A stretch of 63,064 bases of DNA, the filler included, from Hyphochytrium catenoides (taxonomy: Eukaryota > Protista > Hyphochytriomycota): NCBI GenBank assembly GCA_900088475.1. It is 11 parts of 11 records of this genome, joined end to end, with 100 filler letters (N's around TTAATTAATTAA, not from the genome) between each part and the next. Parts side by side here need not be neighbours in the genome. Positions count along the whole stretch, not along the records: positions 37,770 to 42,512 come from FLMG01000645.1; 10 more parts are not named here. One strand, written 5' to 3'. Below the pieces are notes generated by a model, which saw only the letters and a program-made list of their open reading frames with translations, was not told the DNA's origin and did not search any database. The position numbers and the translations under genes were made by a program. This document shows, piece by piece, positions 37,661 through 42,612 of this stretch (its first letter is position 1; each line of letters starts with the position of its first letter).

Positions 37661-39876
37661 CTCAGATTTNNNNNNNNNNNNNNNNNNNNNNNNNNNNNNN
37701 NNNNNNNNNNNNNTTAATTAATTAANNNNNNNNNNNNNNNNNNNNNNNNNNNNNNNNNNNNNNNNNNNNCTCTCTCTCCCTCCCCCCCTTCCCCCTTTTC
37801 CCCTTGCTTTTACCCTTCACCATTCCGTTGATTCTCTCTTGCCCAGTTTGATCAGCTAACAGCTAACCCTAACATTATCCGCCATTTAGGATATTGAAAC
37901 ATTTACGAAGTTACTCGGTCCTTACCCCAAAATACGCTTCATCTGCGACTTATTCCATACATAAAACCAGCAAATCTGTCCCATGTCTTTCGAATACGAA
38001 AACGCCCGTCTCCGACCAAAAGAAGCCATTCGCATGTCCTGATAATACGCCCACAAGCGACGGGTAACGGCTATGATTCTAGCAAAAGATTTCTTGAATG
38101 TGTATGGGCAGAGTGCACCAGAAGATGGCGCCACTGCTGTCTCTTGGATGTGGAAAGAGCACGGCCTTCATTCCATAAGGGAGAAGTTCGAGCAAAAGGC
38201 AGGCGTGAAGGAGGAGGAGGTCGGGAGAAGAAGAGAGAAGTCCCATTACTTAGTTGAGATCTGTCGCGACCAACCTGCAGGGCAGCAGCGGAGGGAGTAG
38301 AGTAGATGCCCTTTTGGAAGAGAAGATTCCGAGTCGCAACCAACTTGCGGGGCAGCAGCGGAGGGACTAGAGTGGGTGCCCTTAGAAGAGAAGGGCGAGA
38401 GAAGAGTTGATAGAGAAGGCGGATGACAGAGCCGGCACACTGTCTCCGAAGCACTTCAGGACCGAGAAAAGAGAGAGGAGATAAAGGTGCCGAAGAAGAA
38501 AGTAGTTAGGTACCTAGAGAGGACGGACTAGTAGCCATACCTTATAGGAGAGAAGAAAAGACAGCTCAGGACTCAGACAGACACCACTCCGTCGCCACTC
38601 AAACGTCCACTCCATTCTTCTTCTTTGGATAGCTCTTAGTTCAACGCCAATGGTCTAGCATGATTCACGGATGGAGAAATGTTTTGCTAGAGGATGTAGT
38701 TAGTTACTTTTAAGAGCCTTGAGGCAGCGCCGGCGTAAGCTTGCGTCTGATTTAGATCCATAGACAGTTGATATAGACGCAAAAGTGCGCTGACCACCGC
38801 AGCCACTCTGGTTGCTGGCATCCTTCTGCAGCCGGCTCTCTAAGTCTGTCATCCGGAGCCTTTTTGAAAGAGAAATGGGCGCTTCTGATAGTCTTTTCCT
38901 CTTAAAGCTGTATCATGATAGCTCAGAAAAGAAATCGTCTTATTTCTCCGTCAGCCTTTCCTCTCACTGCTCTCTCTTCCCTCTCCTTCCTTTATAGCGA
39001 GATGGCGACTCTGTTCTTTTGGTTTTGCATCTAGACAAAGGTCGGAGAAGTCGACGAGACAACGTGGCGATGGCAAGCTAACACCGCAACGACAGCAGCA
39101 GATGTGAGGCATGAGGTGTGTTCTAGAGCTAGTCTATCTCCCTCAGAGTTACTAGCTACTCTGCTCCTTTGCTTTCATTCGACGGCAAGACAAGAAAAGA
39201 GAGATGAAACTCTCTGAGCTAAGTAGCAGTCGTGATAGGGAGGAGAAAGAGAGCTAATAAAGAAAGCGAGCGAAGAAGGGGAGAAAGTGGAAGAAGGTAG
39301 CACCTTCTTGTCGCGATTTGGCAGTTAGCGCACACAATAGATGAACCTGCTCTTTCTCTCTTTCCGGAAGTCCTGATGCTTCTCATCCGCCAATTTCTTG
39401 CTCTGTCGGTCGTCATCACCTCCGGCGTGTCGCCTCATGTCATTCTTCTTCCTCTTCTTCTTCTCTTCCCATCACCCTTCCTGATCTTTGTTACTAGGAG
39501 GAGCTTAATGCTATTGTCACATACACTAGGTAGGGAGAGAGGGAGATGGATGTTGCCCGAATGCAGATCTGTTTCCTTGTTTCTTCTCTCTTTCTCTCTC
39601 TCTCCTCTCTCCTCATCTACTGGTTCATCAGGTGGTTGATCTCTGATTCTCTTCCTCAGATGACCGTCCTCCTCCTGTTCCTCTACTTCCCTATGATTTG
39701 CCCTGTCAATTGAGAGATGAACGAAGAAACAGTTAGGCAATGGTAGCTGAGCATTAGTAGCTGAGCAATAGCAGCTGAGCAATAGTTGTCTAGAGTAGCG
39801 TTAGCGGTAGGCAAAACGGCCTTTTTCGTTGAATAGATGCCAAGAATTTTTATAGTAGCCACTCTCTCTCTTTCTT

Positions 39877-39925
<49 letters not shown>

Positions 39926-40500
39926 CTCTCTCTCTTTCTTTCTCTCTCTCTCTCTTCTTTCTCTCTCTCTCCCTCTCTCTCTCTCTGTCTCTTCTCTGTT
40001 CGGTGCTCTCCCCTCTTGTCCGCTAGGAACTATTTTCCCTCGGCTGTGGTCTTCTCTTGAGATGCTGTGCGAAGCTGATCGGCGATCAACGCCATCCCTG
40101 ATCTTTCGGGTGTCTCCTTCCCTTCGCAGCCGTCCAGTCTCCCTCAAGGCATACAGCCCGCGGAGAGCGCAGCAGCGACGGGTAGGAGAAGAGAGAGAGA
40201 GGGAGCGAGACAGAGAGAGAGAGGCAGCGAGACAGAGAGAGAGAGGCAGGAACGGGAGAGCAAAAGCTAAGGGAGACGTAGAAATTCCGGTTGGGGTTTT
40301 CCATCCTGAACCGAGAGCAAAGAAGAAGGCAGCGCTGTTAGGAAGGGAAAGCCATTGTCATCCCATCATCCCCCGACTCACTAGCCTCACCCTAGGAGAG
40401 GTGCCTAGAAGAATCAATAAAGAGCCAGGCATACTGAGTTACAGAGAAAGAGAGAAGAGAGAGAGGAGAGAGAGAGAGAGAGAGAGAGAAGTCCCAAGCG

Positions 40501-41231
40501 ATGAAAGCCGCTCTCCGCGCTCTGCATGTCAGGCCCAGGCCCTTGGGTTGGACGCCGCCGCCGCCACGGTCATCCTCTCTCTCTTTTCTGTCCGCATGTC
40601 AGAGGACTGGTCGCAGGGATGAGAGAGAGACGAGGAGAGAGACAAGATCCTATCACGGAGAGCCGCAGATTAGGCGCGCTCTGAACCGAGTGTGGACCGA
40701 AGAGGCCAAAGAAGCATTTGTTTGGCAAGAGAAGTGTAGTCAGGTGAGGGAAAGAAGAGAGAGAGAGAGAGAGTGACTAGTATCTCTCTATGTCTTTCCT
40801 CGCTTACTCTCTCTCTCTTTGCCTCTCTGTCTCTCTCTCCCTTTGACGCTGTTTGCTATCTCTAGATCGAGGTCGTAGGCTTAAACGACCAGGTGGTAGA
40901 CTCTGTCTCGGATGGCTCATTGAACGCCTGTGAGAATCTGATCGACCGGCACTTGAAAGCAAGAGGAGACAGAGTCGCGATCTTCTGGAAGAGCGCGGAC
41001 GATGACCCTGTCGTCAGGTGAGTCGGACTTCCTCATTTTTTGCCCTTAGAAAGAGACCATAAAGGTCTCTCTCTCCCTGTCTCTCTCTGTCTCTCTCTCT
41101 CCCTCTCCTCTTCTTCCTTTCTTTCTTTCTTTCTCCTCGTAAATTAGCTCGTAGCTGTCACTGATCGCTCGGTGCAGTTTTTTGCTCTTTCTGCTCCTTT
41201 CTCCCAGCTTCCATTTTACTCTGTTCAAAAG

Positions 41232-41283
<52 letters not shown>

Positions 41284-42286
41284 TGTCTCTCGTCCAATAA
41301 CCATTTATATAACACTCATCGCTCACTCATGTCTCCCACTCTCCCTGCAGACGCATCACCTACCGAGATCTTCACTCTCTCGTCTGCTCCACAGCTTCTT
41401 ATCTGCAGCAGGAGCTGGGACTCAAGCAAGGAGACAACGTCCTTCTCTATCTTCCACGACTGCCAGAGACCGTCTTCTACATTCTGGCTTGTGCCAGACT
41501 AGGCATTTCCTACTCCGTGGCCCATCCCACAGCCTCTCCCCAAGAGCTGAACCGATACATTGACAGGCATAAGCCCAAGCTGATTGTCACGAGCAATCAT
41601 CCATCGAGAGAAGAGAGACGAGCAACGGTTGACTCTTCCTCGAGAAGAGGAGGCGAGGGAGAAGGATGTTCTGGAGTCCTTCTTCCTTGTAAGGAGAAGG
41701 TGGACAAGCTGCTGGAATGGAGCTCTGTGCCGCACGTCGTGGTGGTGGAGCGATGGAAAGAGAAGGGAGAGACGATGATGACGGGGAACAGGGACTATTG
41801 GCACCATGAGCTGCTGAACAAGAGAGAGGGGGACATTGTGGCTCCTGTTGTTGTCCCAGCGGACTCTCCACTCTTCTACACGTTCAGCTCCTCATCACGT
41901 AGGTGCTTTTATCCTCTCCATCTGTCTCTTCTCTCTCTCTCTTGTTCTCTCTCTCTTATTCTTTCCACTGTCGCTTTTCATCTGTTCCTCATTCTTTTTC
42001 CTCTGCCTCTCTTTTTCTTTTCTCTATCGTCTCTCTTCTCTCCTAGTTTCGTCTTATCTGGGTTAACTGTGATCGAACCTTATTTGTTCTTTCTCTCCCC
42101 TTCTCTCTCTCTTTCTTGCCTGTTCTCTCATCTCCCTGTCCCCTCCAGACGCCCCTCATAGCGTGGTTGGCTATCTGATGCACCTGAAGATGACGCTGCA
42201 GATGGAATACAATTTTACTCACGAGGACAGGTTCTGGTGCGTCGCTGACGTCTCCGAGACCAACGGCCACAGCTACGGAGTGTATG
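40501..42286 (+). CDS. Divergent acetyl-CoA synthetase-like (ANL superfamily) protein, 5' part; exons 40501-40743, 40866-41017, 41351-41898, 42149-42286
   Basis: DGSLNACENLIDRHL..RGDRVAIFW, RITYRDL, LGLKQGDNVLLYLPRLPE..LACARLG, DRFWCVADV..GHSYGVY. All splice junctions stay in frame. Arg-rich, acid-poor N-terminus. Confidence 0.85.
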
Positions 42287-42612
42287 GTGAGCAGCTAGAT
42301 AGAGAGTTAGGGCGAGAAGCAGGGGGCGGAAAGGAGGCCGTCGTTGGATGGGCGGAGAGGAAGACAGCTAGATGAGAAAGATGAGAGAGAGAGAGAGAGA
42401 GAGACAGTGTAAAGTCACAGCTACTGGTTGGAGAGCTGGAGCTGCCATAGAGGGAACGTGCGTCGTCAAACCGCGAGGAGGCACAGGGCAAGAGAAAGAG
42501 AGAGAGAGAGAGNNNNNNNNNNNNNNNNNNNNNNNNNNNNNNNNNNNNNNNNNNNNTTAATTAATTAANNNNNNNNNNNNNNNNNNNNNNNNNNNNNNNN
42601 NNNNNNNNNNNN

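Follow-up and report, generated by a model that had tools for sequence, protein, structure and literature searches.

An acetyl-CoA synthetase-like gene without the ATP-binding loop in Hyphochytrium catenoides encodes a candidate pseudoenzyme

Does an acetyl-CoA synthetase (ACS) gene that has lost its ATP-binding loop encode a maintained protein without catalytic activity, or is it a gene in decay, an artefact of the gene model or an enzyme of an unusual kind? ACS occupies a central position in metabolism and serves as a drug target in fungi and parasites. The question is raised by a locus of the protist Hyphochytrium catenoides (Hyphochytriomycota; GenBank assembly GCA_900088475.1), found in a stretch of 63,064 nucleotides composed of 11 parts of this genome joined end to end, hereafter the window. 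The locus lies in the piece from 37770 to 42512, which comes from record FLMG01000645.1. A first-pass annotation had described it as an ACS-like gene of four exons whose product lacks the P-loop and had proposed that it is maintained as a catalytically dead paralogue.

The piece has a G+C content of 50% and is rich in (CT)n and (GA)n microsatellites. Its composition, and the charged low-complexity inserts, give a faint impression of coccidian-type genomes. Four GT-AG exons occupy the last 2 kb of its plus strand (Table 1). The piece ends within intron 4 and so shows about 330 codons, whereas the whole gene would be expected to have about 650-700. Counting the codons of exon 3 from 41352, the translation ends in ...DSPLFYTFSSSS at 41897; base 41898 and bases 42149-42150 together form a split His codon, after which exon 4 reads APHSVVGY...ADVSETNGHSYGVY up to the donor at 42288. 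The splice sites are canonical throughout: the four donors read GTGAGG, GTGAGT, GTAGGT and GTGAGC, and each of the three acceptors has a pyrimidine tract followed by AG. The four exons contain zero stops and zero frameshifts. Translation reproduced, in place, the peptides that the first-pass annotation had read here as well as its four exons free of stops and frameshifts. Inspection by eye of 42288-42512 showed no further ACS homology. The frame of exon 3 (41517-42161) stays open across nearly all of the CT-rich intron 3 up to a stop at 42159-42161, and retention of this intron would yield a Ser/Leu-rich tail and truncation ahead of the exon 4 homology.

Table 1. Features of the ACS-like gene, with positions in the window. 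A slash in a donor or acceptor marks the splice boundary.
Feature	Position	Strand	Basis
Putative exon 1	40501..40743	+	First ATG following an in-frame stop; donor CAG/GTGAGG
Content of exon 1	40501..40743	+	Arg/Ser-rich N-terminal extension, then FW...A...W start of the ACS N-terminal region
Exon 2, ...DGSLNACENLIDRHL...GDRVAIFW... segment, ACS N-terminal region	40866..41017	+	Acceptor tctctag/A; donor CAG/GTGAGT
Exon 3, initial part of the AMP-binding domain, ending in the first half of the P-loop remnant	41351..41898	+	182 stop-free codons; donor CAC/GTAGGT
AHPT replacing FGGF of ...HSVVFGGFS...	41520..41531	+	Alignment with 16 canonical ACS sequences
Low-complexity insert, net 21 residues, REERRATVDSSSRRGGEGEG-like	about 41607..41669	+	phmmer alignment, gap at chain 188-194
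P-loop remnant, 5' part: TFSSSS and first base of the His codon	41880..41898	+	Alignment to ACS
Intron 3, CT-rich, GTAGGT...CCTCCAG	41899..42148	+	250 nt
Exon 4, HSVVGYL...FWCVADVSETNGHSYGVYG	42149..42287	+	ACS homology; donor ATG/GTGAGC
P-loop remnant, 3' part: (H)APHS	42149..42162	+	His 42157-42159 aligns with the conserved post-loop His
SETN replacing GW(V/I)T of AD(V/I)GW(V/I)TGHSY	42253..42264	+	Alignment with 16 canonical ACS sequences
Start of intron 4; rest of the gene (A4-A10 motifs, C-terminal domain) beyond the end of the piece	42288..42512	+	Donor at 42288

The 2.7 kb upstream of the gene (37770-40500) gave no Pfam match for any of six ORFs and no Rfam family, and contain only microsatellites and one 51-nt repeat pair. 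The two members of this pair are direct repeats (38263-38313 and 38333-38383) that are 88% identical, start 70 nt apart and have no Pfam or Rfam match nearby. A 14-nt unit (GCAATAGTAGCTGA) is repeated in tandem at 39737-39786 in 3.6 copies. A (CT)69 tract at 39862-39997 is followed 200-250 nt later by GA-rich tracts (40186-40249 and 40443-40489) that include a 22-nt unit present three times. Taken together, the CT and GA tracts make up inverted arms that are long but imperfect. They lie a short way upstream of the putative ATG at 40501, perhaps in the promoter or 5'UTR region.

The exons were searched singly against profiles and structures rather than as a spliced, joined protein. AcsA models ranked above those of related ligases for exons 2, 3 and 4, with E-values against TIGR02188 (AcsA) of 1.1e-5, 6.9e-27 and 8e-10, respectively. 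The matches are collinear: exon 2 covers positions 49-83 and exon 4 positions 259-301 of TIGR02188, with an overall coverage of about 49-301, and exons 2, 3 and 4 cover positions 70-104, 111-267 and 277-319 of NF001208. The TIGR02188 scores of 94, 37.6 and 23.9 bits belong to exon fragments scored singly from the front half of the gene, while the equivalog cut-off of 724.95 applies to whole proteins. Exon 3 alone scored 73.1 bits (E = 2.4e-20) against Pfam PF00501 (AMP-binding), above the gathering cut-off of 29.9. Exon 2 matches residues 70-101 of Salmonella Acs (E = 1.7e-5), residues 2-181 of the exon 3 query align by phmmer to its residues 108-266, and exon 4 matches a range of ACS chains in the PDB with E-values down to 2.8e-5. 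Exon 3 also matches PrpE and acetoacetate-CoA ligase (E = 4.7e-16 and 1.3e-12), the PrpE match being at least 10 orders of magnitude weaker than that to AcsA. Exon 1 has no Pfam or PDB match, and its residues 63-77 align weakly with the invariant W/W columns of ACS N-termini (hhalign, E = 0.037 over 15 columns). Because exons 2-4 match AcsA best and collinearly, the gene is, judged by homology, a member by descent of the AcsA branch of the ANL superfamily, and the ACS-like identity assigned to it earlier holds on the same matches.

The signature of motif I in ANL enzymes, T[S/G]-S[G]-G-[S/T]-T[S/E]-G[S]-x-P[M]-K-G[L/F], has been implicated in adenylate formation (PMC3438747). At the junction of exons 3 and 4, where motif I (A3) of ACS reads TSGSTGKPKGVxH, the Hyphochytrium protein has TFSSSS-H-APHS, a sequence (T-F-S-S-S-S-H-A-P-H) from which the central Gly, the Pro-Lys and the final Gly are absent and which is 5 residues shorter than the AcsA profile. 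Residue 181 of exon 3 aligns with residue 266 of Salmonella Acs, while residue 3 of exon 4, a His, aligns with His276 and with position 277 of NF001208. The eight reference residues TGKPKGVL are matched by about three to four in the query (Ser, the split-codon His, Ala and Pro), which leaves the loop 5 residues shorter, and the same 5-residue gap is obtained from the AcsA profile coordinates of the end of exon 3 and the start of exon 4.

That this shortfall sits exactly at the exon 3/4 junction, flanked by an intron of low-complexity CT-rich sequence that assembles poorly, could mean that the true P-loop is normal and that it has been obscured by the collapse of a CT-rich region, by misassembly or by an exon beyond the piece, for example an alternative exon. 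However, the end of exon 3 already reads TFSSSS without any Gly, in solid sequence contiguous with the conserved DSPLFYT. Since the loop glycines are gone inside exon 3, the loss of the P-loop is independent of the splice model and of the junction. In addition, two further motifs described below, FGGF and GWVT, are lost in mid-exon, far from the junctions, and intron 3 has good GTAGGT and polypyrimidine-CAG sites. We enumerated all GT donors and AG acceptors in the interval 41840-42215 and computed the 19-residue local junction peptides. The splice used here had been described as the only in-frame one, which is not literally true as 25 in-frame, stop-free GT..AG pairs exist; among them, 41899/42149 alone combines good consensus sites with homology on either side of the junction, and GxxGxPKG is restored by none. 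The 250 nt of intron 3 contain neither AAA nor AAG, and therefore no micro-exon within it can supply the P-loop lysine; GG dinucleotides occur there only three times. Frame-keeping, stop-free AG..GT micro-exons of up to 60 nt in intron 3 would add only LSSYL or RAFILSI and no P-loop, and the sole 15-nt candidate (42047-42061) is one that would add LSSYL. Rescue of the loop by a micro-exon, which the first-pass annotation had named as one outcome that could overturn its proposal, is rejected at the level of the DNA by the lack of a Lys codon in intron 3 and by the 25 failed pairings. The reported loss of the P-loop Gly and Lys residues stands, the motif being absent and not restorable from intron 3, and we regard an artefact of the gene model or assembly as quite improbable.

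The P-loop is not the only altered motif. Aligning exons 2-4 as separate rows to 16 canonical ACS sequences shows SVAHPTAS in place of SVVFGGFS, with loss of the FGGF loop, and ADVSETNGHSY in place of ADVGWVTGHSY, with only AD and GHSY kept. The second of these changes, in GW(V/I)TG, had been noted before and is confirmed, the sequence now reading SETNG; the loss of FGGF and the insert in exon 3 are additional to what had been seen. In Salmonella Acs, the FGGF loop presumably borders the CoA/pantetheine tunnel, and the GW(V/I)T residues of ACS presumably form part of the acetate/AMP pocket. The low-complexity insert of exon 3 stands where bacterial Acs has a short GVRAGR loop.

ANL enzymes are chemically versatile, and with its fold residues well kept and its post-loop His, GY and GHSY retained, the protein could in principle still be an enzyme that has diverged in nucleotide or acyl binding or that carries out a partial or different reaction. 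This is hard to reconcile with the state of motif I, the superfamily signature tied to adenylate formation (PMC3438747), which is here shortened and stripped of every Gly and Lys. Two further ligand-contact motifs are gone as well, and literature searches on ANL and ACS pseudoenzymes and inactive forms yielded no active ANL enzyme without the loop. We know of no active ANL enzyme that lacks the motif I loop and consider retained enzymatic activity very improbable.

The distribution of the changes bears on whether the gene, and not only the enzyme, is dead. We considered the alignment columns in which conservation across the 16 canonical ACS sequences reaches at least 90%. Away from the three ligand motifs the query matches 34 of 40 such columns, and within the motifs it matches 3 of 15, a retention of 85% versus 20% (Fisher p = 1.3e-5) in a comparison whose motifs were chosen after the changes had been seen, two of them being delimited by their presumed structural role. 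When the literature-defined P-loop alone is set against all other columns, 2 of 8 are kept versus 35 of 47 (p = 0.011). In simulations of neutral substitution on the exon DNA, which concern exons that had been selected for being open, all 277 codons stayed stop-free in 4% of runs at 20% of residues changed and in at most 0.02% of runs at 64% or more, the range of motif loss. A single neutral rate cannot account both for motifs that are nearly erased and for a remainder that is open and well conserved, and uniform neutral decay does not fit the conservation pattern read from the sequence.

A pseudogene, meaning an ACS copy (duplicated or unitary) that has fallen out of expression or selection while its visible 5' half has stayed open by chance, would account for the destruction of catalytic motifs that are normally the most conserved, and likewise for the low-complexity insert within exon 3, for a P-loop deletion that abuts a CT-rich, microsatellite-like intron and for the failure to find either a listed RNA run for the locus or a relative in the collections searched; the visible portion is the 5' half, and the 3' half could be disrupted. 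The contrast between motif and non-motif columns speaks against this reading, as it makes the decay non-uniform, and so do the intact state of all 7 splice sites and the lack of any stop or frameshift in 277 homologous codons, for which the neutral probability is at most 0.04 even at 20% residue change. On balance we consider a pseudogene rather unlikely. A variant in which the gene died recently after a long life as a pseudoenzyme, or in which the 3' half is damaged, is possible.

Uneven conservation combined with an open frame therefore favors long-term selection on the fold after the loss of catalysis. What these two features uphold of the earlier proposal that the gene is maintained is the part directed against random decay. 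Taking the evidence together, we assign a probability of roughly 0.55 to the reading that the ACS-like gene is a selectively maintained, non-catalytic ACS-fold paralogue.

Such a maintained, non-catalytic paralogue would still encode the N-terminal ANL fold but would have lost the elements that hold ATP and substrates. The formation of acetyl-AMP should be impossible without these motifs, so that the protein would have no ligase action and the gene would be kept for a non-catalytic ACS-fold product. The Arg/Ser-rich N-terminal extension could serve mitochondrial import. The first 39 residues of the predicted protein, which belong to the weakly supported exon 1, include 7 Arg and 1 Lys but neither Asp nor Glu, and the predicted N-terminus is about 20-45 residues longer than that of bacterial ACS. 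This composition is consistent with the mitochondrial-type presequence proposed in the first-pass annotation. Once in the mitochondrion, the protein might act by binding a partner, for example an active ACS or an enzyme that adds or removes acetyl groups, or by binding a ligand, and not by catalysis. The sequence itself shows the family membership, the motif loss, the intact frame and the uneven conservation; inactivity of the protein, its expression, its targeting and any binding role are inferences from it, and a function as a sensor or as a structural subunit or scaffold is speculation.

A word search with exon 3 found no close relatives, and exact matches to two ORFs of the window were not found. 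An exhaustive search of 1.84 billion representatives gave 2252 hits, all of them to ordinary or distant ACS homologues; identity to the query is 37-45% for the best. A metagenome scan gave a single match, which is distant and probably prokaryotic, and a feature search of protein clusters (atlas) gave only generic AMP-binding clusters. The tree of the exon 3 region is star-like and uninformative, with the query on a long branch. Many of the top matches are ACS homologues with a degenerate P-loop in intact genes (P0008, P0021, P0047, P0092, P0106, P0115, P0117 and P0119), and several of these also lack FGGF. As such homologues occur as intact bacterial genes, retention of a gene despite loss of its P-loop is not unique to the Hyphochytrium locus. 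They form no clade with the query in the exon 3 region tree, and since they do not group with it, loss of the ATP loop appears, at the level of sequence, to have occurred several times in ACS homologues. We tentatively raise the possibility, which we hold to be less likely than not, that ACS-derived pseudoenzymes constitute a recurrent class, so far undescribed. It would comprise this eukaryotic, probably mitochondrial copy and independent bacterial copies, each having lost the P-loop, FGGF and sometimes the A10 lysine; one bacterial copy would be biotinyl-fused and another would lie beside an acetate-permease-type locus. All of them would have been kept to regulate acetyl-CoA metabolism by binding acetate, acyl-CoA or a partner.

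Three of the homologues have architectures or surroundings of their own. P0008 (L003, 8001-10280) is a bacterial ACS homologue of 759 amino acids that has a hydrophobic segment at its N-terminus and a biotinyl/lipoyl domain at its C-terminus. Its P-loop is degenerate (YEPGLNG), it has FHTL for FGGF, and its A10 lysine is replaced (SGD). It is surrounded by housekeeping genes and may, on its motifs, be a non-catalytic ACS-fold protein. P0119 (L004, 8001-9617; L005, 4947-6563), found on 6 contigs, is a 538-amino acid homologue with no C-terminal domain and the degenerate P-loop YDVDDAGELRG. It is located immediately upstream of a DUF4212 gene and a 488-amino acid gene without a Pfam match, and a pair of genes for a sensor kinase and a sigma-54 activator lies upstream of it. 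This arrangement recalls acetate-uptake loci. P0001, a protein of 1273 amino acids on a Logan contig, is a tandem fusion of two ACS-like modules in which the first P-loop is canonical and the second altered (YTAEASGNPKG).

Full-text literature searches, within the terms used, brought to light no description of an ACS or ANL protein without catalytic activity. If the Hyphochytrium gene is expressed and conserved, it would represent a clean example of an ANL pseudoenzyme and provide a handle on the organellar sensing or organization of acetate and acetyl-CoA metabolism. It would also be a caution to annotators that a homology-based acetyl-CoA synthetase label can mask a dead enzyme. As a pseudogene, the locus would be ordinary.

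Compared with AcsA/ACSS enzymes, represented by Salmonella enterica Acs (PDB 1PG4/2P2F), the Hyphochytrium protein keeps N.C..DRH, GD.V..Y.P..PE, LACAR.G, DSPLF, H..GY, FWC.AD and GHSY. Its identity to the canonical ACS consensus is 40% across 249 columns. It differs in the shortened motif I without Gly or Lys, in the exchange of FGGF for AHPT and of GW(V/I)T for SETN, in the net 21-residue low-complexity insert and in the basic N-terminal extension, while its C-terminal half lies beyond the piece. PrpE and acetoacetate-CoA ligase belong to the same ANL subfamily, but both have a canonical P-loop and score far below AcsA for all exons of the query. The mitochondrial ACSS1-type eukaryotic ACS resembles the query as an ACS paralogue with an N-terminal extension that is basic by composition; ACSS1 differs from the query in that its P-loop is intact and it functions as an active ligase. 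The P-loop-degenerate homologues from metagenomic and bacterial contigs share with the query an AcsA-like sequence in which motif I and often FGGF have degenerated in an intact gene, but they are bacterial and intronless, have other architectures and are at most 39% identical to it.
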